A stretch of DNA of 64,000 nucleotides from Basidiobolus meristosporus CBS 931.73. Taxonomy: Eukaryota; Fungi; Basidiobolomycota. The notes under the pieces were generated by a model. The model searched no databases. It worked only from the letters and a program-made list of their open reading frames with translations, and was not told the DNA's origin. Location of the stretch: the NCBI GenBank assembly GCA_002104905.1, contig MCFE01000001.1, positions 124,001 to 188,000 of the forward strand, given 5' to 3'. This document shows, piece by piece, positions 12,019 through 42,726 of this stretch. Position 1 is the stretch's first letter. Each line of letters starts with the position of its first letter. The position numbers and the translations under genes were made by a program.

Positions 12019-12048
12019 TGTAAGGATCTCCGGTGACATGGCGACTTT

Positions 12049-13400: not shown

Positions 13401-13408
13401 ATGAAAAT

Positions 13409-19669: not shown

Positions 19670-19743
19670 GTCTTCGTGGTGTAGTTGGTTATCACGTCTG
19701 TCTAACACACAGACGGTCCTCGGTTCGAATCCGAGCGAAGACA
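19670..19743 (+). tRNA. tRNA-Val(AAC)
   Basis: Cloverleaf GTCTTCG...TCTGT CT AAC AC ACAGA...TTCGAAT...CGAAGAC A; T-run downstream. Confidence 0.95.
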
Positions 19744-19952
19744 TAACTTTTTTCACCAGCAAGCGTGCTACCCCAGTGACTATACTCAAAGTAGCATTAT
19801 TATTATTATTACCGCTGTATAGTATCGTAGTACCGGTGGTGATGGTTGGCAACAGCGAACCACTCCTCCAGAGTGGCACCTGGAGTGATCTCACGGTACA
19901 CATCCTACATTGATTCGACCTGAATTTACACCCATAGTAAACAGACAGAGAT

Positions 19953-20484
19953 ATTGAGTGGGTGGTGCAGAAGAAGGGTTGCTATCACCGAACCATGCTC
20001 AAGGGACAAGTGCGACGACCATAATGAGTCCATATAGAGCAGGCGTTTCTATTAGCATTGTCAAGGGGATTAATATGGTTGTCTGATTGTTGTTTCTTTG
20101 ATTGTTTTGAAGAGAAGAATAGTGCTAGTGAAGCCCCAAAAGGGCTCGGCGTCACCTAGAGGTAGTGCAATACTAGGGACACCTGTGGGCAGACAAGTGT
20201 GCAAGCAGGGACTTATCACCCGATGTTCAAAAATAAGTTTAATATCGAACTGGACTATGTCCAGTGTTTCAGATATTAAGCTGAAAAGAACAGATACTAC
20301 ACTTGATCTTAGCCAAAAGGCCTGAGAGGATTGTAAGGATCTCCGGTGACATGGCGACTTTATTTATACTTACCAATGTTGCATGGGAAGCGGTTTAAAT
20401 TATCAACGCTTTTTGAATTTTTATTCATAGTTTCGTATGTAGAACTGTGGTGTGGACCACATGTGTGTAGTTTTGCATTGGATC
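19953..20484. repeat. 532-bp direct repeat, copy 2 (U2 cassette)
   Basis: Matches 11640-12171. Confidence 0.95.
20143..20331 (-). ncRNA. U2: U2 spliceosomal snRNA, copy 2
   Basis: Same sequence as copy 1. Confidence 0.95.
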
Positions 20485-20736
20485 GAAGATTGACCTTAGA
20501 AAGCGTGAAATCATGGAATTATTAGCACATATGTATATTGGATAGCCCTTGAATCGGATTAAATTGGCAGATGGCCTATGGTAGAGTAGTGAGATGGGAT
20601 GGGATTGTTTGGAATATCCTTAATGTGAAGATGGTAACGAACCAAGGCCAGAGCCATATAGGAGGGTGGATGTTTCGACACACACTCCAGAGTGCAGGCT
20701 ATCATAAACAATTGATGGCTGCGAAGCAAAAGAAAG

Positions 20737-20808
20737 GGGCTCAACCGGGAATTGAACCCGGGACCTCTCCCACCCTAAGGGAGAATTATACCACTAAACC
20801 ATTGAGCC
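20737..20808 (-). tRNA. tRNA-Pro(AGG)
   Basis: GGCTCAA...CTCCC TT AGG GT GGGAG...TTCAATT...TTGAGCC C. Confidence 0.95.
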
Positions 20809-21183
20809 AAGGATACATATGTTGAGTAAATATTTCATTATTTTGGCTAGCCCAGACCAAGGGCTTGGCTAGTTCAGAGTGTTCAACCTGTAAGTCAAGA
20901 ATTGATGCATAATCGACATGGCCAGTGACGTGTTGGTGGAGAGGCTAAATTATTCTCCCTTTGAACGAGTAGGATTGGAGACGGACTCAACTAATGTATC
21001 CGTTGCAGCACAGTCCATGATATACAAGCGTCGGGTGATAGGGTGGTTGAACCAAATAGAGGCACAGGGTACATCCATAGCTGATGAAGGCATATTTTGC
21101 ACGAATACTTACTACAATTAGACGATGGCATTTGGAAGGTATAAAAAATGTTATAAATACAAAATTCCGGAGACTCACATAAT

Positions 21184-21256
21184 GGGGGTCTAGCTCAGAT
21201 GGTAGAGCGCTCGCTTAGCATGCGAGAGGCACTGGGATCGATACCCAGGTCCTCCA
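21184..21256 (+). tRNA. tRNA-Ala(AGC)
   Basis: GGGGGTC...CTCGC TT AGC AT GCGAG...ATCGATA...GTCCTCC A. Confidence 0.93.
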
Positions 21257-21399
21257 TTTTGATTTGACTGGATGGTCAATATTCAAGGGTCTTTTTATGC
21301 CACTCATTAAGCACAGTAGCAAGCTGGCCTGACTGGTAGAGGGGGACACACCCATTCGATACCTGATCTTTTTACTTGCCCAACCAACCATCTGGAAAA

Positions 21400-21471
21400 A
21401 GATTGCACACGGATTTGAACCACCAACCTATCGATCTGCAGCGAATTGCTCTACCACTGAGCTATACCTCT
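21400..21471 (-). pseudogene. tRNA-Cys(GCA)-like, probable pseudogene
   Basis: D arm and anticodon region (GCTCAGTGGTAGAGC...CT GCA GA) are intact, but the T stem (GGTGG/CCGTG) and acceptor stem mispair. Confidence 0.7.
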
Positions 21472-21597
21472 AGAAGAGTGTTGCGCATGCAAATATGCGA
21501 CCCTGCTCAGTAGCGAGAGTACACCATATATACCAACCAGCCAATGTCATGCATGGCTTCTGATTATTGCTCTAGTGTGAAAAAGATGAAAAGTTAT

Positions 21598-21670
21598 CAC
21601 CCAACGTGGGGGTCGAACCCACAACCTTGAGATTAAGAGTCTCACGCTCTACCGATTGAGCTAGCCGGGC
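21598..21670 (-). tRNA. tRNA-Lys(CTT)
   Basis: GCCCGGC...TGAGA CT CTT AA TCTCA...GTTGGGT G. Confidence 0.95.
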
Positions 21671-21878: not shown

Positions 21879-21952
21879 GCTCTTGTGGCGCAATTGGCTA
21901 GCGCGTCTGACTGTTAATCAGGAGGTTGGTGGTTCAAGCCCACCCAGGAGCG
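21879..21952 (+). tRNA. tRNA-Asn(GTT)
   Basis: GCTCTTG...TCTGA CT GTT AA TCAGG...CAGGAGC G. Confidence 0.95.
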
Positions 21953-22194: not shown

Positions 22195-22279
22195 TCCGAA
22201 CACCCGGATTTGAACCAGGGACCTAAAGATTGCTATGTAACACTACAGTCTTCCGCTCTACCAACTGAGCTATGTTCGG
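22195..22279 (-). tRNA. tRNA-Tyr(GTA) with 12-nt intron
   Basis: CCGAACA...GAAGA CT GTA G[tgttacatagca]A TCTTT...TGTTCGG A; C1:G72. Confidence 0.93.
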
Positions 22280-22558
22280 TAACTAGTGTGCCAGAATAGA
22301 AATACTTTCATCAACATATCCACTTATTGAAAAACAAGCTTACTAGTTAGTTCAGCCCTGACGTAGCAAGAAGCACACCGGTGCCCCACAATGCAGGGCA
22401 AAATTCGCTTCATTCTCCCAAGTCGAATACATCTAAATCTGATACGGTATAGTAAAGGAATGATGCTTCTTGAATGATATACCGAAAACGAGATAGATGA
22501 TGTGGCTAGGGCATTCAACAAGAATCTAGTATACAAATCAACCAAGAATTGTGTAAAT

Positions 22559-22641
22559 GGAGAGATGGCCGAGTTGGTCTAAGGCGTCACGTTAAGGCCG
22601 TGATCTCTTCGGAGGCGTGGGTTCGAATCCCACTCTCTTCA
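22559..22641 (+). tRNA. tRNA-Leu(AAG)
   Basis: GGAGAGA...TCACG TT AAG GC CGTGA, long variable arm, TCTCTTC A. Confidence 0.95.
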
Positions 22642-22885
22642 TTCCTTTTCAACCAGTCTTGGTTGAAATTTTCTTTTAATAAGAGTGATAGAGAAAGGGG
22701 GATGGAGTAATAAGCCTGAGGGTAGAAGTATTCGGCACAAGAAGTTTCTACTGCATTTTTCTGAAGCAAAGTAATGAAATTTAACATAGGGGAAAGCCTT
22801 GCCACCTACAAACACAAACCCGGCGGCCATCATCATTGTAAACCCAGGAATAAAAAACTTTGGGATTTGCTCCAAAAAAAATATT

Positions 22886-22958
22886 TGCCTTCTGCCGGAA
22901 TCGAACCAGCGACCTTCTGCTTACTAGGCAGACGCTCTGCCAACTGAGCCAAGGAGGC
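22886..22958 (-). tRNA. tRNA-Thr(AGT)
   Basis: GCCTCCT...TCTGC CT AGT AA GCAGA...AGAAGGC A. Confidence 0.95.
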
Positions 22959-22969
22959 AACGCTTACGT

Positions 22970-23279
22970 TGTTATGAATCGAGGGCAAGCGGAGGAGGAC
23001 CGGAGGATGTCCAATACGAATCAGAGAGGTTATCTGAATAGTTGATGAACCGGTAAAAGGTTGATGCTTTATTGATAGTGTTCAAAGGAGTTTATATAGA
23101 GATAGCCTCGGAGGGAGAGCTTCCGATAACGTAGGGCAAGCTTCCAAAAGGAGGGTTCAAGATGTATTAAATAACGTGTGTATCACTGAGTGCGATTGAT
23201 CGTCTGTGTGGAATTCCAGGTGTTCGATCAGTAGTGTTCAAGTGATCGGTAGTGACTAGTTAGGATTTAAATCATAACA
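22970..23279 (-). repeat. 3' LTR of the intact gypsy element
   Basis: TG...CA termini, adjacent PPT; sequence matches the LTRs at 33443 and 39438. Confidence 0.95.
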
Positions 23280-23290
23280 TACTCCCACAC

Positions 23291-26200
23291 TTAAAGAGGT
23301 TCTTCTCCTGAAGAGTCCTGTCTATCGGACTTGTAATACCAGTATTTGGTTGGTGGTGTCATTGGGTTTTTTAGCTGTGCTTCCTTTAGTCGGTCTCTAT
23401 GCACTAGGTCCTCCTTTACTTTACCTGACATGTCTGCGAGTTGAAATGTATTGAAGGGCATTTCTCTTGTGATAATAAAGGGTCCAACCCAATGTGGTTC
23501 TAGTTTTAGCCTACTTTCATTTCGGACTAATACAAGTTTTCCCAAAGTTAAGGGTTTTGTTACCACTGTTTTGTTGTACTGTTCTTTCATCTTCTCTGCT
23601 TGTCGTTTTAAATTCTTGATGGCATCATGTCTTGCATGTCCTAATTCTTCCAGTTCCCTTGTTCTGAATTCTGCCAAGTCTTTTTGGTTCTTTAAGTCCC
23701 AGATGTATGGTGGTAAGGTATCACCTGGGATTCTTGGATGTGTACCATACACTAGGTAGAAGGGGGACTTTTGTGTTGCTGAATGGACTCTAATACGACA
23801 GGCAAAGAGTGCTTGATGTACAAATTCATCCCACTTATGTTTGGCTCCTTTGACATAAGTAGTCAGCATCTTCCCAAAGAGTCCATTGAACCTCTCTGTG
23901 ACCCCATTTGTTCTAGGGTGGTATGCTGATGTCTTCAAATGTCTAACCCCCATTATCTGAAGGTATTCTTTCAAGGTTTGTTCCAAAAAGTTTGCTCCTC
24001 TGTCAGACAGAATTTCACCTGGGCATCCAAACTGCATAAAGATTTCCAGGTAAAGGAATTTTGCAACATTTTTTGCAGTAGCTGCTGGCATGGCTTTTGC
24101 TATACACCACTTAGTGGTATGGTCAATTGCAGTTATGATCCACTTGTTCCCTCTTGAAGTTTCAGGCAATATTCCAATGAAGTCAATTCCCCATCTGTAG
24201 AATGCTGGAACTGGAGTCAGTGGTTCTAATGGGGCATGTTCCTTGTTGTATGGTCTAGCCAGCTGGCACTCAGGGCAGGTCTTGAGGGTCTCAGCTATAA
24301 ATTGTTTGAGTTTAGGCCACCAGGCTCTCCTTTTAGTTATTTCATAAGTTCCTTGGATGCCCAGATGTCCAAAGGCTTTATGATTCTTGATTATCATGTC
24401 ACCTCTGTATACAAATGGAATATATGGTACAGGCCCTATTTCTTCCATGTGTCTGTAAAGTACCTCGTCTTCACCATATGAGAAATTCTCTGCTTCTTTC
24501 TTAATCTTGACCCTTACTTCCTGTGATAAATCTTCTGGCATTGTCTGACTTGCCAAGTACTCTGGCATGTATTCTGGCCAGTCCAACTCATGATCTACCA
24601 TTGATATATGTTGCCTTGAGAGTGCATCAGCAACTGTATTCTTTGGCCCAGGGAGGTAGTGGATTTTAAAATCAAATTGTTGTAGTTCTTCAATCCATCT
24701 AGTTATTCTTCTGGATAATAGCTTCTGGGTGTGAATGTATCTTAGGGATGCATGATCTGTATATACCACAAAGTGTTTGCCCTCCAAGTAGCATCTCCAC
24801 ACTCTCAGACAATGTAGTATGGCATAGAGTTCTTTTTCATGGACTGGGTAGTTTTGTTCAGTTACTGATAGCTTTTTGGACTCATAAGCAACCGGGTGTT
24901 CTTTTTGAGTCAGTACCCCTCCAACAGCTAGATCTGAAGCATCAGTGTATACACAGAAAGGTTCTGAGAAATCAGGCAACTGAAGCACAGGGGTTTGGCA
25001 TAGCTTTTCTTTCAGAGTTAGGAAAGCTGTCTCACAGTTTGGGGTCCATATATAGTCTTTCTCTTTTTTGGTCAAGTCTGTAAGGGGGGCTGCAATAGTT
25101 GCAAAGTCCCTGATGAATCTTCTGTAATATGATGCAAGTCCCAGGAAGGATCTCATTTCAGTGAGTGACTTTGGGGCTTCCCATTTCTGGATAGCATCTA
25201 TCTTGGCTGGATCCATGTGTAGTCCTTTATCTGAGATTATGTGACCAAGGTATTCAACTGATCTGGTGAGGAATTCACACTTAGGAAGTTGTGCATATAG
25301 CTTGTGCTTTTTTAGTATAGCCAGTACTGTCTTCAAGTGCTTCATGTGGTCATCCATGCTGGTACTATAGATCAGAATGTCATCTAAGTAGACCAGGACA
25401 AATTTCTCTAAATATGGTTCCAGGATGCTATTCATGAGTGTCTGAAATGTTGCTGGGGCATTAGTCAGGCCAAAGCTCATCACAACAAACTCATAATGAC
25501 CATATCTTGTGTTGAATGCTGTCTTAGAGGTGTCTTCAGGCTTAATTCTGATTTGGTGATATCCAGATGCCAGGTCTATTTTAGAGAATATCTTTGCCTT
25601 CCCCAGTTGGTCAAAGAGGGCATCAATTCTTGGTAATGGGTAGGAATTTCTGACAGTGATTGCATTTAGGGCCCTGTAGTCCACACAGAACCGTAGCTTC
25701 CCATCCTTCTTTGGAGCAAAGAGTACTGGAGCTCCCCATGGTGATTTACTGGGTTTTATCCAGCCTTTAGCCAGGTAGTCCTTCAATGTTTCCTTCAAAG
25801 TCTCCATTTCCTTTGGGGAGAACTTATATGGGGCTCTGTTTCTTGGTTTATCATCTGTTACTTCTATGGCATGGTCAATCTCTCTGCTTGGGGGTAGTGC
25901 AGGGATTTCCTTGGGAAAAACCTCTTGAAACTCTGCTAACAAGGTCTTGAGCCTGTCATTTGTCACTTCTGTGGTCTCTTGGATTTTGGCAAAGGCTATC
26001 ATGTGCAACAGTTTGGGATTCTGTCTGATAGAGTGGGCAAACTGTTTCTTTGATATGGTGTGTTCTGGTGCATTGCCTTTGTCCAGGGTTGGTTTGGGTG
26101 ACAGATGATATTTTGCATCATCCTTGTTGATTACAACTTCCTGAGTCTGCCAGTTTATGTCAGGATTGTGCTTTCTTAGCCAAGTTTGTCCCACATTGAT

Positions 26201-27640
26201 TTCAAAGTTGGCTTGGGGTATGATAATTGGGGAAATGGTGTCTTGGAAGTCCCTGATTTGTAAAGTCAAGGGTTCAGTCCTGCTGTTCACTATAATTGAT
26301 TCCTTGGTGGCACAGAGGATGTGAATTGGGGGGCAAGGGATTGTTTGTAGCTTCATCTGATCAGCTACATCTTTTGAAATGTAGACATCAGTTGCTCCAC
26401 TGTCAATGAGTACAGAGACACATTGGTTGTTGTTGAGAATCCCTGGGAGTTTCAGCATCTTTGGGGTAGTATATAAGCTCTGAGTCCTCTGATACTCCTT
26501 AACAAGGCTGATTGTGTGCTCCTCCTCCTTAGTGGAGAGTTGGAATACTCTTTGTAATGGCCTCTTTGGGCATTCATTGACTTTATGACCCTGTTCCTTG
26601 CAGTAAAAGCATAGTCCAAGCTTGAAGCATTCCTCTTTAGAAGGTCTTGGTGTGCTCTGCATAACATCTAGGTCCATAGGCTCCAGTGTGTGGGGGTAGT
26701 GTGCACCTTGTTCAGTGATTGGTTGACTACCAATAGGTATGTGGTTATTGGCTTTGAGGCCTGTAGTAGTTCTTGAGTGACCAATTCTGTGGTTGACAGC
26801 CCTTCTGAAGTGTATGGCATCATATCTTTCTGCCAGTTCCATAGCCTCTACTAGGGTTTTGGGGTCTTTGTATTCAATTTCCCATCTAGTGTTGGATTTC
26901 AGGCCTCTTAGGTATTGCTCAAGTAGTTCAGTATCAGGCATGTTTTGAATTTCCATACTAAGCAAGTTAAACTGCTCATTGTACTCTTGAACAGACTTGG
27001 CTTGAAAGAGTTTGGACAGTTTTTCTCTTGCCATTCTATCAGCATTGATAGGTGTAAACCTCTTTCTCAATGCTTTAACAAAGTCAGCCCAGGAGGCTAT
27101 GGGTGGAAAGATGCCCCTATTCATTCCTTGAATGTGAAGTTTCCACCACATGGTTGCTTCCTTTCTGAAAAGTGAACAGGCATAATGTACTTTGACTTCT
27201 TCAGAGTCATCTGAGAAGTATAGGTACTGCTCTACTTCAAATATCCAAGTCTCTAGAGTGGCAGTGTGTCTTTTGCCTTCAAAGATGTTGGGTTTCTGAA
27301 GTTTCAGATTTGTTGCTCTATATTGTTTTGTGAAGTCCAGAGAGCCTTGCCCATCTTCTCCAAGATTCAAGGAATTGGGAGGCACCGCAGGTCTTACAGA
27401 TGAGGCTTCACCCTCTCTCTGTATACCTTGACCAGTAAACCATGATCTCTGGGTGTTCACAAAATGTAAAGAGTCCAAGTCTGTCTGCCTACCCATTCTT
27501 GGGTCCAGACTAGGGAGGGCCGCAGGCTCAGTTGTGTGGGACTGTCCTTGACCGGCTAACTCAGCAACTTGTTGTTCAAGACTCTCAATATAGGCCAACA
27601 TTTCTTCTGAAGAGCTAAATTTTGGCCTTTCTTCACTCAT
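23291..27640 (-). CDS. Gag-Pol polyprotein (1449 aa): gag, CCHC knuckle, aspartic protease, RT, RNase H, integrase; no chromodomain
   Basis: [14 protein letters not shown]; LIDSGA; LVYLDDILI; YTDASD; HKAFGH...CPEC; WGIDF, ILSDRG and NGVTERFN. Confidence 0.97.
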
Positions 27641-28024
27641 TTTGTTTTTGGGTATTGTTTGATTTGCGGTAGGCGGGTGTGTTTACCAAGGGGGCTGGTT
27701 CTCTGGCAGAATTGACTGGGTACTGTTTTTTTTTTTTTTTTGAGTGAAACGGAGGGTTTCTCTGGGAGTGGAGGTCTCGGCAGGTACGAGGTATCTCTGG
27801 ACAATTGGAAGATATCTGGGAGATCGAGTTTCTGGGAGATCGGAGAGTTTCTGGAGATCGGAAGAGTTTCTGAGAGATTGGAAAAGTTTCTGGGAGATCG
27901 GAAGAGTTTCTGAGAGATGGAAAGTTTCTGGGAGATCGGAAGAGTTTCTGAGAGATTGGAAAAGTTTCTGGGAGGTACGGAGGTTTTTGTTTTTTTTTGG
28001 AGATCGGAGGTTCGCTGCTACCAA

Positions 28025-28334
28025 TGTTATGAATCGAGGGCAAGCGGAGGAGGACCGGAGGATGTCCAATACGGATCAGAGAGGTTATCTGAATAGTTGA
28101 TGAACCGGTAAAAGGTTGATGCTTTATTGATAGTGTTCAAAGGCGTTTATATAGAGATAGCCTCGGAGGGAGAGCTTCCGATAACGTAGGGCAAGCTTCC
28201 AAAAGGAGGGTTCAAGATGTATTAAATAACGTGTGTATCACTGAGTGCGATTGATTGTCTGTGTGCAATTCCAGGTGTTCGATCAGTAGTGTTCAAGTGA
28301 TCGGTAGTGACTAGTTAGGATTTAAATCATAACA
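28025..28334 (-). repeat. 5' LTR of the intact gypsy element
   Basis: Adjacent to the PBS; four substitutions relative to the 3' LTR. Confidence 0.95.
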
Positions 28335-28630
28335 TTACATCCATCTCATATTTTTCTTACGACTAGAAAGGTTCGCAAACCTAGAGTGTTCATGTCACTC
28401 GATACTAATTTTTTTGTGATTAAAAGAACTTCCAAATTCGTCAATTTTCAGTGGTCGTTAATTATTGCCAAATAGCTTGTAACAAAAGGAAACACAAAGC
28501 TACCAACGATGCCAGATTGTGCTTGTATGAGAACACACGCTATCTAGTAATGCACTTTCAAAATGTGGTTCATTTGCACCTTGAATGCAAGTCTGTGGGC
28601 TGTACTGATCTGACAACCACTAAAATAAAA

Positions 28631-28701
28631 TGCCATTGCTCGGAATCGAACCGAGGTCGACGCGGCCACAACGCGATGTACTGCCACTATACTACAATGG
28701 C
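28631..28701 (-). tRNA. tRNA-His(GTG)
   Basis: GCCATTG...CGCG TT GTG GC CGCG...CAATGGC A. Confidence 0.92.
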
Positions 28702-28881
28702 GAATTCAGTATTTGACCCATTACCTGACTTCATGTTATGTTCACTGATTATACCTTGCGACTAGCTACCCATCTGCATTGGTAGGTTCAATGTGAAGAT
28801 GGGTACATGATACAGTGAGCATTCTGAATGGAGTAAAGTCTTGTGGGAATATAGAGTTTTGCTTGCTTTCTAACAATAACT

Positions 28882-28953
28882 TCCTCATTGGTCCAGTGGT
28901 TAGGATTTCTCGCTTTCACCGAGACGGCCGGGGTTCGATTCCCCGATGGGGAA
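28882..28953 (+). tRNA. tRNA-Glu(TTC)
   Basis: TCCTCAT...TCTCG CT TTC AC CGAGA...ATGGGGA A. Confidence 0.95.
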
Positions 28954-29153
28954 ATACTTTTGTCCTATGTTTTTATTAGTGGTTGGGATGATATGCAGGA
29001 AAGCCGCAAGCTCAAGGGCCCCGTGTAGAGAATACCAAAATGATCAAGGCCATCCTTACGTGAAGCATACACACAAAAAGTGATCGATCTTTTTTCATAT
29101 ATGGGGACTGGCCAAGGTCCTACTGATACAACACCCACCAAAACAAAAATCAG

Positions 29154-29225
29154 TGAGGAGTGCGTGATTTGAACACGCAACCTTTCGCTCTGGAGGCGAA
29201 CGCGCTACCGTTGCGCCAACCCCCC
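29154..29225 (-). tRNA. tRNA-Trp(CCA)
   Basis: GGGGGGT...TTCGC CT CCA GA GCGAA...ACTCCTC A. Confidence 0.95.
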
Positions 29226-29369: not shown

Positions 29370-29443
29370 GTCTTCGTGGTGTAGTTGGTTATCACGTCTG
29401 TCTAACACACAGACGGTCCTCGGTTCGAATCCGAGCGAAGACA
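29370..29443 (+). tRNA. tRNA-Val(AAC), copy 2
   Basis: Identical to 19670-19743; flanks differ. Confidence 0.95.
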
Positions 29444-29660: not shown

Positions 29661-29733
29661 GGGGGTCTAGCTCAGATGGTAGAGCGCTCGCTTAGCATGC
29701 GAGAGGCACTGGGATCGATACCCAGGTCCTCCA
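29661..29733 (+). tRNA. tRNA-Ala(AGC), copy 2
   Basis: Identical to 21184-21256. Confidence 0.93.
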
Positions 29734-29954
29734 GTATCGATTATACGGTATTCGTTTTGCTTGGAATCTGTACTGCCAATACACCTTTGAAGAAGCAGCA
29801 TGGAAGCGTACTGCAAACAGGTGTGATATCTATTTTAGATATTTCGCGTAAGAGCATCACTAGGACAAAGGCCTAAATGCTGCTTTCCTCTATTGTTCGG
29901 TGTGCATATTTCAATTCCAAAAGGTATATGGCTAAGAGGTGCAAAAAGCAAAAA

Positions 29955-30027
29955 CACCCAACGTGGGGGTCGAACCCACAACCTTGAGATTAAGAGTCTC
30001 ACGCTCTACCGATTGAGCTAGCCGGGC
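29955..30027 (-). tRNA. tRNA-Lys(CTT), copy 2
   Basis: Identical to 21598-21670. Confidence 0.95.
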
Positions 30028-30213
30028 ATGTTACACTTCAGTTACCGTGTGTTATGTTATAACATCGCAGATCCTGAGAAAGACAAAGTAGATGATCGAA
30101 TACATCTCTAAAAAATGCAAGAGCCAGTATACTGCTATCACTACTGTCACTTGATAACTCGATGGGTTGCCTGTCTAATCCTATGATAACACGGATCAAA
30201 ACTATCCTAAAAA

Positions 30214-30286
30214 TGCCGTCTCTGCGGATTGAACGCAGGACCTTCAGAACTTCAGTCTGACGCTCTCCCAACTGAGCTAAGACGGC
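30214..30286 (-). tRNA. tRNA-Phe(GAA)
   Basis: GCCGTCT...TCAGA CT GAA GT TCTGA...AGACGGC A. Confidence 0.95.
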
Positions 30287-31742: not shown

Positions 31743-31813
31743 TGCATACTCGGGGAATCGAACCCCGGTCTACCGCGTGGCAGGCGGTAATTATACCACT
31801 AAACCAAGTATGC
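31743..31813 (-). tRNA. tRNA-Gly(GCC)
   Basis: GCATACT...ACCGC CT GCC AC GCGGT...AGTATGC A. Confidence 0.95.
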
Positions 31814-32166: not shown

Positions 32167-32238
32167 TCCGCATTGGTCCAGTGGTCAGGATCTCTCGCTC
32201 TCACCGAGAAGGCCGGGGTTCGATTCCCCGATGCGGAA
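32167..32238 (+). tRNA. tRNA-Glu(CTC)
   Basis: TCCGCAT...TCTCG CT CTC AC CGAGA...ATGCGGA A. Confidence 0.95.
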
Positions 32239-32410
32239 GTTCACATTCAGTAACTTTTTGTAAGTTGGTGTAGTACGAGTGACTCGAGATGAAATTATTT
32301 TGTGATCACAAGAGAGGATCAGCGACAAACTATAGATCTTTCTTGTTGCTAGCACATGTTTAGATGTATGTACAATTGTTAATGATCCGACCTCCAATAT
32401 GACTGTACAT

Positions 32411-32483
32411 GGGCGTATGGCCAAATGGATAAGGCGCCTGACTACGGATCAGGAGATTCCAGGTTCGATCCCTGGTATGCTCG
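32411..32483 (+). tRNA. tRNA-Arg(ACG)
   Basis: GGGCGTA...CCTGA CT ACG GA TCAGG...TATGCTC G. Confidence 0.95.
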
Positions 32484-32751
32484 TACAACAATTTTTTATG
32501 TTCCATGTTACTCGGAATACTAATACTCAAACTTACTTTTGTAAGTTTCATGGCATGATAAGCTCTAGACATGATGGCTGCAATCAGTGCATATCCTCTG
32601 CAATACAATAGTTTATTTGATTATTCACTCGATAGCATTGTGATGTCTACTAGCTGTTATGTTCTTTCATAAAAAGGCCATTGCCCACACCATCACGTAT
32701 CATCAAACCCAACCTTCAATTAATCCCATCATCCAAATAGCCAAAAGAAAA

Positions 32752-32823
32752 CTCTCAGACCGGGAATTGAACCCGGGTCTCCCGCGTGACAGGCGGGGAT
32801 ACTTACCACTATACTATCTGAGA
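32752..32823 (-). tRNA. tRNA-Asp(GTC)
   Basis: TCTCAGA...CCCGC CT GTC AC GCGGG...TCTGAGA G. Confidence 0.95.
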
Positions 32824-33270
32824 AGATATCTATCAAGTGAAATATTTAATTTATAACGCACACTATTTAATACTTGGTAAAGCATATTAGGGAGGCTATC
32901 GGGCTGGCAAAAACAATTTGAACAATTAGCCTACGTATGAAAATACATTTTCCCCTCTCCCACCCATCTATGATGTGTGTCAATTTCCCCCAGCTGCACA
33001 GTGTATATCTTCTGACTCAGTAAAAACATACACACGATATTTACTACACAATAAAATGGGTATATTGCTGCAACGTTGTTGGCCTTTGATTGTACATTGA
33101 TTAGATTGAATTCAATAAAAATCACAATTTCTACTTTGAGCACTGATTGACAAATAAGCGCTAAAATGGATTTACTCATGAATAAAGTACCATACAAGTG
33201 ACCATCCGACTTCCATTCAACACCCTGCCCCCTACTCCAACTAAATACTGCACACAGAAAAAGGTAAAAA

Positions 33271-33344
33271 TGCTCACAGCAGGGGTCGAACCTGCGACCT
33301 TGGCGTTATTAGCACCACGCTCTAACCAACTGAGCTATGCGAGC
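33271..33344 (-). tRNA. tRNA-Ile(AAT)
   Basis: GCTCGCA...TGGTG CT AAT AA CGCCA...TGTGAGC A, followed by TTTTT. Confidence 0.95.
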
Positions 33345-33349
33345 ATATA

Positions 33350-33431
33350 CGACAACAGCAGGATTTGAACCTGCGCGGGCAGAGCCCATATGATTTCTAG
33401 TCATACGCCTTAACCACTCGGCCATATTGTC
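33350..33431 (-). tRNA. tRNA-Ser(AGA)
   Basis: GACAATA...TATGA CT AGA AA TCATA, long variable arm, TGTTGTC G. Confidence 0.95.
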
Positions 33432-33442
33432 TGATATATCAA

Positions 33443-36400
33443 TGTTATGATTTAAATCCTAACTAGTCACTACCGATCACTTGAACACTACTGATCGAAC
33501 ACCTGGAATTCCACACAGACGATCAATCGCACTCAGTGATACACACGTTATTTAATACATCTTGAACCCTCCTTTTGGAAGCTTGCCCTACGTTATCGGA
33601 AGCTCTCCCTCCGAGGCTATCTCTATATAAACTCCTTTGAACACTATCAATAAAGCATCAACCTTTTACCGGTTCATCAACTATTCAGATAACCTCTCTG
33701 ATTCGTATTGGACATCCTCCGGTCCTCCTCCGCTTGCCCTCGATTCATAACATTGGTAGCAGCGAACCTCCGATCTCCAAAAAACAAAAACCTCCGTACC
33801 TCCCAGAAACTTTTCCAATCTCTCAGAAACTCTTCCGATCTCCCAGAAACTTTTCCAATCTCTCAGAAACTCTTCCGATCTCCCAGAAACTTTTCCAATC
33901 TCTCAGAAACTCTTCCGATCTCCCAGAAACTCTTCCGATCTCCCAGAAACTCTTCCGATCTCCCAGATATTCTTCCAATTGTCCAGAGATACCCTCCGTA
34001 CCTGCCCGAGACCCTCCCAACCTCCCAGAGAAACCCTCCGTTTCACTCAAAAAAAGAAAAAAAACAGTACCCAGTCAATTCTGCCAGAGAACCAGCCCCC
34101 TTGGTAAACACACCCGCCTACCGCAAATCAAACAATACCCAAAAACAAAATGAGTGAAGAAAAGCCAAAATTTAGCTCTTCAGAAGAAATGTTGGCCTAT
34201 ATTGAGAGTCTTGAACAACAAGTTGCTGAGTTAGCCGGTCAAGGACAGTCCCACACAACTGAGCCTGCGGCCCTCCCTAGTCTGGACCCAAGAATGGGTA
34301 GGCAGACAGACTTGGACTCTTTACATTTTGTGAACACCCAGAGATCATGGTTTACTGGTCAAGGTATACAGAGAGAGGGTGAAGCCTCATCTGTAAGACC
34401 TGCGGTGCCTCCCAATTCCTTGAATCTTGGAGAAGATGGGCAAGGCTCTCTGGACTTCACAAAACAATATAGAGCAACAAATCTGAAACTTCAGAAACCC
34501 AACATCTTTGAAGGCAAAAGACACACTGCCACTCTAGAGACTTGGATATTTGAAGTAGAGCAGTACCTATACTTCTCAGATGACTCTGAAGAAGTCAAAG
34601 TACATTATGCCTGTTCACTTTTCAGAAAGGAAGCAACCATGTGGTGGAAACTTCACATTCAAGGAATGAATAGGGGCATCTTTCCACCCATAGCCTCCTG
34701 GGCTGACTTTGTTAAAGCATTGAGAAAGAGGTTTACACCTATCAATGCTGATAGAATGGCAAGAGAAAAACTGTCCAAACTCTTTCAAGCCAAGTCTGTT
34801 CAAGAGTACAATGAGCAGTTTAACTTGCTTAGTATGGAAATTCAAAACATGCCTGATACTGAACTACTTGAGCAATACCTAAGAGGCCTGAAATCCAACA
34901 CTAGATGGGAAATTGAATACAAAGACCCCAAAACCCTAGTAGAGGCTATGGAACTGGCAGAAAGATATGATGCCATACACTTCAGAAGGGCTGTCAACCA
35001 CAGAATTGGTCACTCAAGAACTACTACAGGCCTCAAAGCCAATAACCACATACCTATTGGTAGTCAACCAATCACTGAACAAGGTGCACACTACCCCCAC
35101 ACACTGGAGCCTATGGACCTAGATGTTATGCAGAGCACACCAAGACCTTCTAAAGAGGAATGCTTCAAGCTTGGACTATGCTTTTACTGCAAGGAACAGG
35201 GTCATAAAGTCAATGAATGCCCAAAGAGGCCATTACAAAGAGTATTCCAACTCTCCACTAAGGAGGAGGAGCACACAATCAGCCTTGTTAAGGAGTATCA
35301 GAGGACTCAGAGCTTATATACTACCCCAAAGATGCTGAAACTCCCAGGGATTCTCAACAACAACCAATGTGTCTCTGTACTCATTGACAGTGGAGCAACT
35401 GATGTCTACATTTCAAAAGATGTAGCTGATCAGATGAAGCTACAAACAATCCCTTGCCCCCCAATTCACATCCTCTGTGCCACCAAGGAATCAATTATAG
35501 TGAACAGCAGGACTGAACCCTTGACTTTACAAATCAGGGACTTCCAAGACACCATTTCCCCAATTATCATACCCCAAGCCAACTTTGAAATCAATGTGGG
35601 ACAAACTTGGCTAAGAAAGCACAATCCTGACATAAACTGGCAGACTCAGGAAGTTGTAATCAACAAGGATGATGCAAAATATCATCTGTCACCCAAACCA
35701 ACCCTGGACAAAGGCAATGCACCAGAACACACCATATCAAAGAAACAGTTTGCCCACTCTATCAGACAGAATCCCAAACTGTTGCACATGATAGCCTTTG
35801 CCAAAATCCAAGAGACCACAGAAGTGACAAATGACAGGCTCAAGACCTTGTTAGCAGAGTTTCAAGAGGTTTTTCCCAAGGAAATCCCTGCACTACCCCC
35901 AAGCAGAGAGATTGACCATGCCATAGAAGTAACAGATGATAAACCAAGAAACAGAGCCCCATATAAGTTCTCCCCAAAGGAAATGGAGACTTTGAAGGAA
36001 ACATTGAAGGACTACCTGGCTAAAGGCTGGATAAAACCCAGTAAATCACCATGGGGAGCTCCAGTACTCTTTGCTCCAAAGAAGGATGGGAAGCTACGGT
36101 TCTGTGTGGACTACAGGGCCCTAAATGCAATCACTGTCAGAAATTCCTACCCATTACCAAGAATTGATGCCCTCTTTGACCAACTGGGGAAGGCAAAGAT
36201 ATTCTCTAAAATAGACCTGGCATCTGGATATCACCAAATCAGAATTAAGCCTGAAGACACCTCTAAGACAGCATTCAACACAAGATATGGTCATTATGAG
36301 TTTGTTGTGATGAGCTTTGGCCTGACTAATGCCCCAGCAACATTTCAGACACTCATGAATAGCATCCTGGAACCATATTTAGAGAAATTTGTCCTGGTCT

Positions 36401-36551
36401 ACTTAGATGACATTCTGATCTATAGTACCAGCATGGATGACCACATGAAGCACTTGAAGACAGTACTGGCTATACTAAAAAAGCACAAGCTATATGCACA
36501 ACTTCCTAAGTGTGATTCCTCACCAGATCAGTTGAATACCTTGGTCACATA
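33443..36551 (+). mobile_element. 5' half of Ty3/gypsy element (LTR 33443-33752, PBS 33754-33764, gag-PR-partial RT from 34150); left arm of palindrome
   Basis: Same family as 22970-28334; truncated just after the YLDD region of RT. Confidence 0.93.
33801..33980 (+). repeat. 20-bp tandem repeat (TCyCAGAAACTyTTCCrATC, 8 units plus 1 degenerate) in the gypsy leader; mirrored near 39210-39390, related array near 27810-27975
   Basis: Read directly from the sequence. Confidence 0.9.
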
Positions 36552-36561
36552 TTGATCTCAT

Positions 36562-39500
36562 AAGATCTCATTTCAGTGAGTGACTTTGGGCTTCCCATTT
36601 CTGGATACTCTATCATGTGTAGTCCTTTATCTGAGATTATGTGACCAAGGTATTCAACTGATCTGGTGAGGAATTCACACTTAGGAAGTTGTGCATATAG
36701 CTTGTGCTTTTTTAGTATAGCCAGTACTGTCTTCAAGTGCTTCATGTGGTCATCCATGCTGGTACTATAGATCAGAATGTCATCTAAGTAGACCAGGACA
36801 AATTTCTCTAAATATGGTTCCAGGATGCTATTCATGAGTGTCTGAAATGTTGCTGGGGCATTAGTCAGGCCAAAGCTCATCACAACAAACTCATAATGAC
36901 CATATCTTGTGTTGAATGCTGTCTTAGAGGTGTCTTCAGGCTTAATTCTGATTTGGTGATATCCAGATGCCAGGTCTATTTTAGAGAATATCTTTGCCTT
37001 CCCCAGTTGGTCAAAGAGGGCATCAATTCTTGGTAATGGGTAGGAATTTCTGACAGTGATTGCATTTAGGGCCCTGTAGTCCACACAGAACCGTAGCTTC
37101 CCATCCTTCTTTGGAGCAAAGAGTACTGGAGCTCCCCATGGTGATTTACTGGGTTTTATCCAGCCTTTAGCCAGGTAGTCCTTCAATGTTTCCTTCAAAG
37201 TCTCCATTTCCTTTGGGGAGAACTTATATGGGGCTCTGTTTCTTGGTTTATCATCTGTTACTTCTATGGCATGGTCAATCTCTCTGCTTGGGGGTAGTGC
37301 AGGGATTTCCTTGGGAAAAACCTCTTGAAACTCTGCTAACAAGGTCTTGAGCCTGTCATTTGTCACTTCTGTGGTCTCTTGGATTTTGGCAAAGGCTATC
37401 ATGTGCAACAGTTTGGGATTCTGTCTGATAGAGTGGGCAAACTGTTTCTTTGATATGGTGTGTTCTGGTGCATTGCCTTTGTCCAGGGTTGGTTTGGGTG
37501 ACAGATGATATTTTGCATCATCCTTGTTGATTACAACTTCCTGAGTCTGCCAGTTTATGTCAGGATTGTGCTTTCTTAGCCAAGTTTGTCCCACATTGAT
37601 TTCAAAGTTGGCTTGGGGTATGATAATTGGGGAAATGGTGTCTTGGAAGTCCCTGATTTGTAAAGTCAAGGGTTCAGTCCTGCTGTTCACTATAATTGAT
37701 TCCTTGGTGGCACAGAGGATGTGAATTGGGGGGCAAGGGATTGTTTGTAGCTTCATCTGATCAGCTACATCTTTTGAAATGTAGACATCAGTTGCTCCAC
37801 TGTCAATGAGTACAGAGACACATTGGTTGTTGTTGAGAATCCCTGGGAGTTTCAGCATCTTTGGGGTAGTATATAAGCTCTGAGTCCTCTGATACTCCTT
37901 AACAAGGCTGATTGTGTGCTCCTCCTCCTTAGTGGAGAGTTGGAATACTCTTTGTAATGGCCTCTTTGGGCATTCATTGACTTTATGACCCTGTTCCTTG
38001 CAGTAAAAGCATAGTCCAAGCTTGAAGCATTCCTCTTTAGAAGGTCTTGGTGTGCTCTGCATAACATCTAGGTCCATAGGCTCCAGTGTGTGGGGGTAGT
38101 GTGCACCTTGTTCAGTGATTGGTTGACTACCAATAGGTATGTGGTTATTGGCTTTGAGGCCTGTAGTAGTTCTTGAGTGACCAATTCTGTGGTTGACAGC
38201 CCTTCTGAAGTGTATGGCATCATATCTTTCTGCCAGTTCCATAGCCTCTACTAGGGTTTTGGGGTCTTTGTATTCAATTTCCCATCTAGTGTTGGATTTC
38301 AGGCCTCTTAGGTATTGCTCAAGTAGTTCAGTATCAGGCATGTTTTGAATTTCCATACTAAGCAAGTTAAACTGCTCATTGTACTCTTGAACAGACTTGG
38401 CTTGAAAGAGTTTGGACAGTTTTTCTCTTGCCATTCTATCAGCATTGATAGGTGTAAACCTCTTTCTCAATGCTTTAACAAAGTCAGCCCAGGAGGCTAT
38501 GGGTGGAAAGATGCCCCTATTCATTCCTTGAATGTGAAGTTTCCACCACATGGTTGCTTCCTTTCTGAAAAGTGAACAGGCATAATGTACTTTGACTTCT
38601 TCAGAGTCATCTGAGAAGTATAGGTACTGCTCTACTTCAAATATCCAAGTCTCTAGAGTGGCAGTGTGTCTTTTGCCTTCAAAGATGTTGGGTTTCTGAA
38701 GTTTCAGATTTGTTGCTCTATATTGTTTTGTGAAGTCCAGAGAGCCTTGCCCATCTTCTCCAAGATTCAAGGAATTGGGAGGCACCGCAGGTCTTACAGA
38801 TGAGGCTTCACCCTCTCTCTGTATACCTTGACCAGTAAACCATGATCTCTGGGTGTTCACAAAATGTAAAGAGTCCAAGTCTGTCTGCCTACCCATTCTT
38901 GGGTCCAGACTAGGGAGGGCCGCAGGCTCAGTTGTGTGGGACTGTCCTTGACCGGCTAACTCAGCAACTTGTTGTTCAAGACTCTCAATATAGGCCAACA
39001 TTTCTTCTGAAGAGCTAAATTTTGGCTTTTCTTCACTCATTTTGTTTTTGGGTATTGTTTGATTTGCGGTAGGCGGGTGTGTTTACCAAGGGGGCTGGTT
39101 CTCTGGCAGAATTGACTGGGTACTGTTTTTTTTCTTTTTTTGAGTGAAACGGAGGGTTTCTCTGGGAGGTTGGGAGGGTCTCGGGCAGGTACGGAGGGTA
39201 TCTCTGGACAATTGGAAGAATATCTGGGAGATCGGAAGAGTTTCTGGGAGATCGGAAGAGTTTCTGGGAGATCGGAAGAGTTTCTGAGAGATTGGAAAAG
39301 TTTCTGGGAGATCGGAAGAGTTTCTGAGAGATTGGAAAAGTTTCTGGGAGATCGGAAGAGTTTCTGAGAGATTGGAAAAGTTTCTGGGAGGTACGGAGGT
39401 TTTTGTTTTTTGGAGATCGGAGGTTCGCTGCTACCAATGTTATGAATCGAGGGCAAGCGGAGGAGGACCGGAGGATGTCCAATACGAATCAGAGAGGTTA

Positions 39501-39747
39501 TCTGAATAGTTGATGAACCGGTAAAAGGTTGATGCTTTATTGATAGTGTTCAAAGGAGTTTATATAGAGATAGCCTCGGAGGGAGAGCTTCCGATAACGT
39601 AGGGCAAGCTTCCAAAAGGAGGGTTCAAGATGTATTAAATAACGTGTGTATCACTGAGTGCGATTGATCGTCTGTGTGGAATTCCAGGTGTTCGATCAGT
39701 AGTGTTCAAGTGATCGGTAGTGACTAGTTAGGATTTAAATCATAACA
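36562..39747 (-). mobile_element. 5' half of Ty3/gypsy element (LTR 39438-39747, gag-PR-partial RT to 39040); right arm of palindrome
   Basis: Reverse complement of the left arm over 36638-39747. Confidence 0.93.
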
Positions 39748-39971
39748 ATAAGGTTCGGTTAATCCAAGTTCCTATTGCATTTTTTACTGCAACAACATTC
39801 ACTGAGTCTATGGTGGGTTCTGCTACGTTGGTTTTATATTCTTTGACCTCAGGGTATCCAGATTCCCGATGCTGTTGCTTGCTAGGCCAGTAATACTTGG
39901 GGAATGTCAGTCTCACTCTAGATCAAAGTGGAGCGATGTACCATAGCATTTCGTATACCTGCTCGTGTATA

Positions 39972-40055
39972 GCTGATTTGGCCGAGTGGTCTAAGGCGGG
40001 TGACTTAAGATCCCCTCCCGGAAACGGGGCGTGAGTTCGAACCTCACAGTCAGCA
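39972..40055 (+). tRNA. tRNA-Leu(TAA)
   Basis: GCTGATT...GGTGA CT TAA GA TCCCC (one mismatch), long variable arm, AGTCAGC A, T-run. Confidence 0.88.
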
Positions 40056-40579
40056 TCTTTTTCTTACTTGCCTGGATTCTATTCTATTTTGAGTCCCGGG
40101 TTATTTGTATGATCATTTCCCAATTAATTAATTGGATTCAATGCATCCAATTCAATTGAGTATACGGCCACTGGTGGTGCTCTTCATTTGGGTACACTGG
40201 CGGAGGAGCCTTTTCCCTTTCCCATCACCCGTCGACATGTTCCTTCCATTCACCACCCAGTTAGGTGGGATGCGGTGGCGATATAGACATTGCCAAGGCC
40301 AAGGAGTATGTGGAAACTCTGAATATGTAAGTAGGCCAACTTCCTGTATCTTTACCTTTGGGGAGTGGGCAATTGCTGCGCACAAAGTAATCCTAAATTT
40401 TAATTCTACCTCTTGATACAGCCTGGCCCAACCAGCCTAATCCTTATATCTCCCTTGATTTTCATACTCTGCTTCATCTGGCTGACCATCAATCAATTTC
40501 CGTCATTCCCATAGCTTGTCAGACTGAACCAAACCCCCGGGTAATTCAATCCTTGGGTATGACGAAGAGCAAAAAACTT

Positions 40580-40652
40580 TGGAGCTGCAGGGTATCGATC
40601 CCTGTGCCTCTCGCATGCAAAGCGAGCGCTCTACCATCTGAGCTACAACCCC
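40580..40652 (-). tRNA. tRNA-Ala(TGC)
   Basis: GGGGTTG...CTCGC TT TGC AT GCGAG...CAGCTCC A. Confidence 0.95.
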
Positions 40653-41225
40653 ATTCGATATACTCCTTCATGTAGCCGTGGAGTTTAATAATGAATTATA
40701 TTGCCTTTGAATTGACGTTTTGCCGAGTTTCCCTCGGTATTGGTTGCCAATATACGCCTGTGGAAGATCACTTGGCTCTGTCAGTATGTGTGTGCGTTCA
40801 CTCTCACTCTCACTCTCACACACCTCCATGTTCCCGAACTCTTTCTTTCTTTCATCTCTATCCCAGCCCGGCTACCTAACCCAAGCCAGTCCAGAGCAAA
40901 TACGCCCTCCAAACTCTTCTTGGGCAATACATAAATACATACTCCAGTAGAAATAATTCCATATCATCCCTTTGAATTCTTTACCCCAACTCAAAGATAC
41001 TCTTCACCCACACCCACCTAGCCATCAGTACGCATCCATTGGTGTGCGTGGGTGGATACTGGTGGCTAGTTGATTTGCTAGTAGGCCTATTGCTAAGGAG
41101 TTTGGCGACTTCCTTCCATGTATCGCGTTCCTCGCCGTTGCCACCCCTAACCCTATACACATTGCTCCGCTGCACTTACACTGAACAACTAATCTATCTA
41201 CCCTCCCAAAAGGTTTTCTAAAAAG

Positions 41226-41298
41226 TGGAGATTCCGGGTATCGATCCCGGTGCCTATCGCATGCGAAGCGATCGCTCTACCATTTGAGCTAAACCCCC
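41226..41298 (-). tRNA. tRNA-Ala(CGC)
   Basis: GGGGGTT...ATCGC TT CGC AT GCGAT...AATCTCC A. Confidence 0.95.
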
Positions 41299-41802
41299 AA
41301 AGCCTGAGTACCTTAATGTCGCCAATTACGAATACAAATATTAATAAAGAAAAAGCTCAACACAAAGATTCGAACCAGGGACCTTCTCTAAAGCTCGCGC
41401 AACTCGCTCACTTGAGTCCTCATTTGTGTTTTAAAATTGGCCTGGCTTGGCTGGCTGGCTGGCTGATTCGTTTTTCTTCTCCCTCACTGTTGCCTAATTA
41501 TCACATCTAGTGTTTGAGTGACCTCGTCTTTTGTAACAGATGCCTAGTATGCAAATATCCCCGCTACGTTTCTTAACAGGGTCTCATGTAGGCTGCTCTT
41601 CTTCCAGCATCCACTATGGCCGATTGCTATGCAGGAATGGAATGGTCTGGAGCTGGATCCACATTTATATACACCTCAGTATTATAGGAGATATTTGCTC
41701 TTTCTATTCGAATGGGGAATCCACACACTCTTGTTAGTTGTTGCTTGGCTACGCACCTAGTATGCCATCAATTAAAAGACACTACTCACCTAAGTCTGTA
41801 TA

Positions 41803-41886
41803 GCTGATTTGGCCGAGTGGTCTAAGGCGGGTGACTTAAGATCCCCTCCCGGAAACGGGGCGTGAGTTCGAACCTCACAGTCAGCA
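41803..41886 (+). tRNA. tRNA-Leu(TAA), copy 2
   Basis: Identical to 39972-40055. Confidence 0.88.
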
Positions 41887-42653
41887 TCTTTTGCTCTAAT
41901 TAGCTTTGGCTTTCAAATGCTAACTAATGCTGTTATTATTATCCCATATATCCGTTCTTTTGGCTGATGCCACCCATACATAGACACAATGACCTCAATT
42001 GTGCCTCCAATCTAATCCCCAGCTGTCACTACCTAGCTCCCCTCAGCTTTGCCATTGATAACACTCGTTTGTGCACCATTTGCTGTCTTACCTCAATTTA
42101 ATTGCCTTTTGGCACAATAAGGTACATGCTGCTTGCTTGGTTGCACCATGATCTGACCTCTGGTTAATGCTCTTTGTTCGGATTAGGGTTTGTGAAGAGA
42201 TTTTTCTCTGATATATTTCTCTGGAAGGGAGCAAAATGTGGGCAAAAATTTTACCAATAATTTCAGCATCCCTTCCCTTATGCAGTCAAGGGAATGTGCG
42301 GTTGGCCATCTGGTGGCACGTCCATATGTGTGTGGTGGGGGCAGTGTTCCTGTGAATCGAACCATGTACCCTTCAGTGTATCTAGATTATTCTTAGGCAA
42401 TATTCACCCAACCTACTAACTAGGCTAACATTCGCATTTTTAATTGTCTATGAAGCGCCACAGATTTCTCCTTAACACTGACGGGGACTAGACCCCTTAA
42501 TTAAGATCTCTAACTTATATGAGCTCCCTCGCCAGGTATTGATGCGGCTCTTGTATCACCTAAAAGAGGGGCGATAGCCAACGCAAACATAGTATATGCC
42601 TGACAGTAACGCAAGGAAGCAAAATACCAAAAATTGCACAAATTAAGTGTCAT

Positions 42654-42726
42654 TGGAGATTCCGGGTATCGATCCTGGTGCCTATCGCATGCGAAGCGAT
42701 CGCTCTACCATTTGAGCTAAACCCCC
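42654..42726 (-). tRNA. tRNA-Ala(CGC), copy 2 (one T-stem mismatch)
   Basis: Part of a duplication of 41226-41545 at 42654-42965; a CpG>TpG change gives an A-C pair in the T stem. Confidence 0.75.

Follow-up and report, generated by a model that had tools for sequence, protein, structure and literature searches.

The locus described here raises the question of how 28 transfer RNA (tRNA) genes came to lie together in one stretch of a fungal genome, and whether selection has kept them there. The genes occupy positions 19669–42727 of the 64,000-nt stretch that we analysed (the window hereafter; positions 124,001–188,000 of contig MCFE01000001.1, from Basidiobolus meristosporus CBS 931.73), in which position 1 is the first nucleotide. 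Our analyses indicate that they very probably form a genuine nuclear heterogeneous tRNA cluster: a continuous array of about 11.4 kb, with 28 intact tRNA genes and a gene for the U2 small nuclear RNA (snRNA), that grew by duplication and was later split by Ty3-like retrotransposons.

Over the whole window, ARAGORN predicted a total of 30 tRNA genes. A search with the Rfam tRNA model RF00005 (gathering score, 29 bits) independently gave the same 30, with scores of 43.8–65.8 bits, and of at least 49.5 bits for the 28 genes in the range. A reading made earlier from the letters of this DNA (the sequence-only reading) had listed these 28 genes, and the two programs agree with its coordinates and tally for 28 of 28: Val x2, Pro, Ala x5, Lys x2, Asn, Tyr, Leu x4, Thr x2, His, Glu x2, Trp, Phe, Gly, Arg, Asp, Ile and Ser. 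This tally covers 17 amino acids and 21 anticodons. Genes for tRNA-Met and tRNA-Gln are absent from both sets of calls and the Cys pseudogene is present as a sub-threshold hit, as that reading also held. No tRNA gene was called in 20 dinucleotide shuffles of positions 19601–42800, versus 28 in the real sequence; locally, 31 kb of the window contain all 30 tRNA genes and the other 33 kb none. Eight anticodons with adenosine at position 34 (A34, inosine substrates) and the intron in tRNA-Tyr are features of eukaryotic nuclear genes. The intron mode of ARAGORN offered tRNA-Asp for the latter gene (22195–22279), a reading that we rejected because the canonical intron position, 37/38, yields the anticodon GTA and hence tRNA-Tyr.

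Two Ty3/gypsy insertions separate the genes into three sub-arrays, with eight genes in sub-array 1 and 15 in sub-array 2 (Table 1). The DNA of the array outside transposable elements amounts to 3301 + 5104 + 2980 = 11,385 bp, matching the earlier estimate of about 11 kb. Once the insertions are removed, the joins between sub-arrays measure only about 300 and 235 bp and the spacing between neighbours is roughly 150–1000 bp, with a median of about 270 bp; therefore, the ancestral structure was one array of 11,385 bp, which the two insertions would later have cut into three pieces. All gaps inside the sub-arrays are of 4–992 nt in the ARAGORN predictions, thus below 1000 nt, and gene density in sub-array 2 reaches about three per kb. 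The sequence-only reading was likewise correct in describing dense genes on both strands with no host protein gene among them: open reading frames (ORFs) within the array do not exceed 131 amino acids, mostly overlap tRNA genes and have no match in Pfam. Rfam searches at E values up to 1 revealed nothing in the array besides tRNA and U2, no candidate C/D-box small nucleolar RNA emerged from the larger spacers with a simple heuristic based on motifs and stems, and no solo long terminal repeat (LTR) was found in the spacers when looking for TG..CA, inverted ends and duplications of 4–6 bp. Adjacent genes are antiparallel in 19 of 27 pairs (one-sided p = 0.026), including 7/7 pairs in sub-array 1; this excess is a weak signal.

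The sequence of the individual genes suggests that each would be its own unit for RNA polymerase III (Pol III), ending in its own oligo-T terminator; the intactness of the tRNA bodies implies internal promoters. A run of four or more T lies at most 22 nt downstream of 27 of the 28 genes, the exception being tRNA-Ser(AGA). This gene is separated by a spacer of 4–5 nt from tRNA-Ile(AAT), it is not followed by a T-run within 30 nt, and TTTT occurs directly after tRNA-Ile; the pair is thus probably a dicistronic Pol III unit, with predicted co-transcription of both genes. Dimeric tRNA genes are also found in Saccharomyces cerevisiae, in which tRNA-Arg is paired with tRNA-Asp. The dimeric tRNA-Ser/tRNA-Met gene from Schizosaccharomyces pombe (PMC4234475) resembles the Basidiobolus pair in that both genes share a strand and are only a few nt from each other, tRNA-Ser is the upstream one and a terminator comes after the second gene only; the downstream partner, however, is the initiator tRNA-Met instead of tRNA-Ile(AAT). 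Compared with the known yeast dimers, the Ser-Ile pairing would be a new combination.

Both Ty3/gypsy insertions occurred immediately upstream of a tRNA gene, with a distance of 11 nt between the LTR end and the mature 5′ end of tRNA-Thr (22958) in one case and of tRNA-Ser (33431) in the other. The first element is full-length and contains a single ORF of 1449 amino acids with the order gag, protease (PR), reverse transcriptase (RT), RNase H and integrase (IN), as determined with Pfam, and is flanked by TACGT/TACAT. The second is a palindrome with arms of 3110 nt that show no substitutions, a unique centre of 86 nt and outer flanks without a common target-site duplication. Taking as reference the positions described for Ty3-type insertions (PMC5911963; PMC4600332), and by analogy with them, the element appears to target approximately the Pol III start site, perhaps through a putative tether between integrase and TFIIIB. 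As both insertions are at –11, the analogy with Ty3 and Tj1 suggests that the Pol III machinery was present on tRNA-Thr and tRNA-Ser when they were hit. With insertion points about where Pol III starts, the array may therefore have acted as a landing pad for this Ty3-like element. The likeness to Ty3 from S. cerevisiae and Tj1 from Schizosaccharomyces japonicus comprises the order of domains and the insertion near the Pol III start, here at two independent sites; in contrast, the host here is an early-diverging fungus, and a rearranged palindrome makes up one copy out of two.

Two other features of the Ty3-like element are a primer-binding site (28005–28024, minus strand), beginning TGGTAGCAGCG and complementary to the tRNA 3′ end ...CGCTGCTACCA, and a variable 20-bp tandem repeat in the 5′ untranslated region, just downstream of the primer-binding site (27834–27995, 33760–34007 and 39208–39411). 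We take the match of the primer-binding site to resemble initiator tRNA-Met, a tRNA absent from the array.

Comparison of the sub-arrays provides information on how the array was assembled. Sub-arrays 1 and 2 have in common five tRNA species, Val-AAC, Ala-AGC, Lys-CTT, Leu-AAG and Thr-AGT, whose order and strand agree between the two (Val+, Ala+, Lys–, Leu+, Thr–; permutation p = 5.5e-4) and whose sequences are identical. The remaining genes differ, with five shared out of eight and 15, and spacers of the two sub-arrays show no residual similarity over shuffled sequence, except for the Lys-to-Leu spacers, which have embedded tRNA genes. With colinear, identical tRNA genes set in saturated spacers, these patterns point to a probable old direct duplication of Val-Ala-Lys-Leu-Thr, with a period of about 4.3 kb without the Ty3 element, followed by gene gain and loss while the tRNA bodies stayed constant. 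Younger duplications are also seen by self-blast: positions 41226–41545 and 42654–42965 are 96% identical, and 40664–42204 is 93% identical to a copy displaced outside the array (48938–50473). Additionally, the U2 gene inside the array is part of a 552-bp duplication (11640–12191 versus 19953–20503, 98.7% identity) with copies 8.3 kb apart, between which lie an old copia element and tRNA-Val. Growth by duplication is thus apparent in the sequence: local duplications of several ages enlarged the array, the younger ones giving rise to the Leu-TAA/Ala-CGC units and to the second U2 copy, and purifying selection, with or without gene conversion, would hold the tRNA bodies constant. We infer that the genes are maintained by such selection.

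The five-gene backbone in direct orientation, with its period of about 4.3 kb without the Ty3 element, could alternatively be the old and diverged two-unit remnant of a head-to-tail, multi-tRNA cassette, modified by gene gain and loss. We consider this a tentative but serious possibility, since only two units exist, they retain no spacer similarity and the non-shared genes (10 of the 15 in sub-array 2) exceed the shared ones; in any case, this model refines the explanation of a duplication-grown array and is compatible with it. The same data qualify the earlier suggestion of a repeated array unit, which was partly right in view of the old Val-Ala-Lys-Leu-Thr and the younger Leu-TAA/Ala-CGC duplications, but not as regards near-identical tandem copies: head-to-tail repetition of near-identical units is not present, and sub-array 3 contains only partial duplications of 0.3–1.5 kb.

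The distribution of CpG dinucleotides sets the duplication-grown array apart from the repeats around it. The ratio of observed to expected CpG is retained in the tRNA genes (0.92), the array spacers (0.57, irrespective of how far the nearest gene is) and the regions of host genes (0.68–0.92), and is depleted in the transposons (0.06–0.21) and in the displaced copy of part of the array (0.07). The array, keeping its CpG where transposons and the displaced copy have lost it, therefore behaves as gene space and not as repeat space. The displaced copy, separated from the array by decayed gypsy remnants (42938–48600), has lost 41 of 46 CpGs, and C>T or G>A changes account for 62 of its 99 substitutions, with a non-CpG divergence of 3.6%; this loss is the derived state, as a third copy shows. 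It contains two dead tRNA genes (Rfam scores, 43.8 and 44.1 bits) in which every CpG has turned into TpG or CpA; neither these nor the two U2 genes figured in the sequence-only reading. Decay of methylated cytosines is the likely cause of the CpG loss. Retained CpG and the placement of the Ty3-type elements at –11 may together be taken as indirect signs of active Pol III units. Incidentally, the eroded Ala-CGC gene reads as a different isoacceptor to tRNA finders.

Several observations nevertheless weigh against this interpretation or restrict it. The evidence for colinearity consists of five genes at one locus, and the activity of the genes and the hypomethylation of the array are deduced from the sequence. 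There is no clear AT or A peak upstream of the genes that would correspond to a TATA-like element as in S. pombe. Young Ty3 copies are already CpG-poor, a low value that is largely inherited, and the contrast between transposons and array is for this reason partly one of inherited composition; decay in place is shown by the displaced array copy only. Lastly, the palindrome may be either a very recent fold-back rearrangement or an artefact of long-read assembly.

A broader proposal would have most Basidiobolus tRNA genes lying in multi-isoacceptor cassettes, this locus being an old, single-copy and diverged member in which Pol III occupancy excludes cytosine methylation and which acts as a chromatin boundary or pericentromeric element; we regard it as rather unlikely.

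The sequence-only reading had favoured a near-complete decoding set and, as one inference, a selected Pol III domain. The first was overstated: computing codon reading with wobble from inosine, G and U at position 34 (I34, G34 and U34), the 21 anticodons read 43 of the 61 sense codons, and 68% of the codons in two neighbouring host ORFs, and the array lacks tRNAs for Met, Gln and Cys as well as those with C34 for the frequent codons CTG, CCG, GTG, ACG and TCG. If the array were a translation kit favoured by selection, or a Pol III domain under joint regulation, selection would maintain the co-location itself, for example for the sake of shared chromatin or coordinated output. The 21 anticodons are indeed mostly major I34/G34 decoders of the C-ending codons preferred by neighbouring host ORFs, CpG is retained over the entire array, and the antiparallel excess differs from the mostly parallel pairs in typical tandem-grown clusters (PMC2888827). 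However, the set is incomplete and, with five Ala and four Leu genes, also redundant, and its content is as expected from duplication of high-copy families, which explains it without selection for co-location; together with purifying selection on each gene, duplication accounts for what the array contains. Besides, in a survey of 74 eukaryotes heterogeneous clusters of tRNA genes (tDNA) were patchy across eukaryotes and fast-evolving, with no clade-wide regularities (PMC2888827). We therefore consider selection for co-location unlikely.

Quite improbable, in our opinion, is a centromere-linked or pericentromeric tRNA cluster working as a chromatin boundary in the manner of fission yeasts. The array lies in a gene-free tract of only about 44 kb, bounded on both sides by host genes identified with Pfam, PUF3 within about 8 kb on the left and, on the right, an ORF similar to DUF3684/sacsin that begins about 5 kb past the last of the decayed tRNA copies. 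That an apparent super-array was created by a collapsed or chimeric join is scarcely credible, given that, although the 6.3-kb perfect palindrome (33441–39747) without a target-site duplication is a structure that long-read assemblers can create, all array spacers are unique sequence by self-blast and the element between sub-arrays 1 and 2 is a normal, full-length one whose flanks match, such that an artefact would at most concern the join of sub-arrays 2 and 3.

The closest fungal match to the Basidiobolus array is found in the fission yeasts, where such clusters are already known. Centromeric tRNA clusters of Schizosaccharomyces octosporus and S. cryophilus conserve order and orientation, but not the intervening sequence (PMC6538654), and Tj1 inserts at most 12 bp upstream of tRNA genes, hence its accumulation in the tRNA-rich centromeres of S. 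japonicus (PMC4600332). The telomere-to-telomere assembly of this species contains 3885 tRNA genes, with 5.6-kb units of 18 tRNA genes plus 5S ribosomal RNA (rRNA) genes in 34 and 46 repeats, and a subtelomeric array of 15 tRNAs; fission-yeast units comprise 9–18 tRNA genes in about 5–6 kb (bioRxiv 10.1101/2023.09.04.556195). The Basidiobolus locus shares with them the many tRNA species, a few hundred bp apart and on both strands, the LTR retrotransposons just upstream of tRNAs, and the maintenance of order and orientation without the spacers, although here between paralogous blocks within the locus. Conversely, the host belongs to Basidiobolomycota instead of Taphrinomycotina, there is no near-identical tandem array or 5S rRNA gene, a U2 snRNA gene is included, and a centromeric position would be hypothetical; ordinary host genes lie 5–8 kb away.

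Outside of the fission yeasts, the heterogeneous tDNA clusters from the survey of Bermudez-Santana et al. (2010; PMC2888827) are similar in having genes less than 1000 nt apart, several isoacceptor families, pseudogenes, and rapid local duplication and turnover; unlike in that survey, with mostly parallel adjacent pairs, the pairs here are mainly antiparallel, and the cluster is large (28 genes). As in the arrays of Entamoeba, the tRNA genes occupy dedicated gene-free stretches; in Entamoeba (PMC2652664), however, units have at most five tRNA genes, are repeated head-to-tail many times and carry microsatellite-like repeats between genes, none of which occurs here. A literature search found no description of the organization of tRNA genes in Basidiobolus or other zygomycete fungi, and exact-pattern scans of metagenomes for the Ser-Ile junction and for the lineage-specific part of tRNA-Ser gave no match.

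Concerning the host, the flanking PUF3 is 90% and 86% identical to two proteins from Basidiobolus ranarum, the next matches being glomeromycotan (about 62%), and according to the NCBI taxonomy the genus belongs to Basidiobolomycota and hence lies outside Dikarya; the Dikarya, against which the locus had been set in the sequence-only reading, are thus not the appropriate frame. On the other side, the DUF3684/sacsin-like ORF has 63% GC compared to about 40% around it, a CpG observed/expected of 0.92 and codons that strongly end in C or G, a striking compositional contrast with its surroundings.

Each Ala-CGC gene in the array is also preceded, at a distance of about 60 nt, by a tRNA-like relic (41340–41420, minus strand, and a copy near 42770–42850, minus strand). 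Both relics combine a B-box-like GGTTCGAATCT with part of a T arm and a subsequent T5 run, and neither ARAGORN nor Rfam called them; these relics are consistent with turnover. A further orphan B-box-like site is found at 42353–42363 (minus strand).

Table 1. Position of the tRNA array and of other features in the 64-kb window; scores are for Rfam models, and CpG o/e is the ratio of observed to expected CpG.
Feature	Position	Strand	Evidence and remarks
PUF3 host gene	9159–11168		Pfam; left boundary
U2 snRNA, copy 1	11827–12020	–	Rfam, 151.2 bits; outside array, adjoins PUF3
Ty1/copia element, old	13259–18084	–	LTRs about 86% identical; Pfam RVT_2, rve, gag_pre-integrs; CpG o/e 0.09
tRNA-Val(AAC)	19669–19744	+	First of sub-array 1; 64.7 bits; T6 terminator at +5
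U2 snRNA, copy 2	20140–20333	–	Rfam RF00004, 151.2 bits, full length; inside array
tRNA-Pro(AGG)	20736–20808	–	ARAGORN; 57.4 bits
tRNA-Ala(AGC)	21184–21255	+	ARAGORN; 53.4 bits
tRNA-Cys(GCA)-like pseudogene	21405–21467	–	24.5 bits, sub-threshold; no ARAGORN call; anticodon and T arm broken
tRNA-Lys(CTT)	21598–21670	–	ARAGORN; 64 bits
tRNA-Asn(GTT)	21879–21952	+	ARAGORN; 65.7 bits
tRNA-Tyr(GTA), 85 nt	22195–22279	–	59.9 bits; 12-nt intron after position 37
tRNA-Leu(AAG)	22558–22642	+	ARAGORN; 56.1 bits
tRNA-Thr(AGT)	22885–22959	–	Last of sub-array 1; 65.1 bits; LTR begins 11 nt upstream of 5′ end
Ty3/gypsy LTR retrotransposon, full-length	22970–28336	–	Pfam, self-blast; 311-bp LTRs 98.7% identical
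tRNA-His(GTG)	28631–28701	–	First of sub-array 2; 61.9 bits
tRNA-Glu(TTC)	28881–28954	+	ARAGORN; 61.1 bits
tRNA-Trp(CCA)	29153–29225	–	ARAGORN; 65.1 bits
tRNA-Val(AAC)	29370–29443	+	ARAGORN, Rfam; identical to sub-array 1 copy
tRNA-Ala(AGC)	29661–29732	+	ARAGORN, Rfam; identical to copy at 21184
tRNA-Lys(CTT)	29954–30028	–	ARAGORN, Rfam; 100% identical to copy at 21598
tRNA-Phe(GAA)	30214–30286	–	ARAGORN; 65.7 bits
tRNA-Leu(AAG)	30708–30792	+	ARAGORN, Rfam; identical to copy at 22558
tRNA-Thr(AGT)	30964–31038	–	ARAGORN, Rfam; identical to sub-array 1 copy
tRNA-Gly(GCC)	31742–31814	–	ARAGORN; 65.6 bits
tRNA-Glu(CTC)	32167–32238	+	ARAGORN; 62.8 bits
tRNA-Arg(ACG)	32410–32484	+	ARAGORN; 60.8 bits
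tRNA-Asp(GTC)	32751–32824	–	ARAGORN; 63.6 bits
tRNA-Ser(AGA) then tRNA-Ile(AAT)	33270–33431	–	Ser 33350–33431, 63.0 bits; Ile 33270–33345, 65.8 bits
Ty3/gypsy palindrome, 6.3 kb	33441–39747		Two 5′ halves (LTR-gag-PR-RT), same family
tRNA-Leu(TAA)	39972–40055	+	First of sub-array 3; 49.5 bits
tRNA-Ala(TGC)	40579–40653	–	ARAGORN; 60.7 bits
tRNA-Ala(CGC)	41225–41298	–	ARAGORN; 58.1 bits
tRNA-Leu(TAA), second copy	41803–41886	+	ARAGORN, Rfam; identical
tRNA-Ala(CGC)	42653–42727	–	52.6 bits; one T-stem mismatch; terminator only at +21
Ty3/gypsy remnants, decayed	42938–48600	+ (IN); – (RT-RNaseH, PR, gag)	Pfam; CpG o/e 0.06
Displaced, CpG-eroded duplicate of 40664–42204	48938–50473	+	Self-blast; 93% identity
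Dead Ala-CGC, anticodon now TGC	49493–49567	–	ARAGORN; 43.8–44.1 bits
Dead Leu-TAA	50072–50155	+	ARAGORN; 43.8–44.1 bits
DUF3684/sacsin-like ORF, 1889 amino acids	55305–60974	–	Pfam

On its own, this locus is a well-documented example and not a discovery. It extends far outside Dikarya the pattern seen in fission yeasts, with dense multi-species clusters, order kept without spacers and retrotransposon landing pads at Pol III starts. If the broader proposal of cassettes with a boundary function were true, an architecture of tRNA genes and LTR retrotransposons like that of fission yeasts would have arisen independently in an early-diverging fungus, or would be far older in fungi than thought. 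The locus also offers a compact natural experiment, in which the intact tRNA genes and their spacers kept their CpG and the copy displaced into transposon DNA lost nearly all of it, so that a link of Pol III genes to protection from decay driven by methylation can be tested directly in Basidiobolus.

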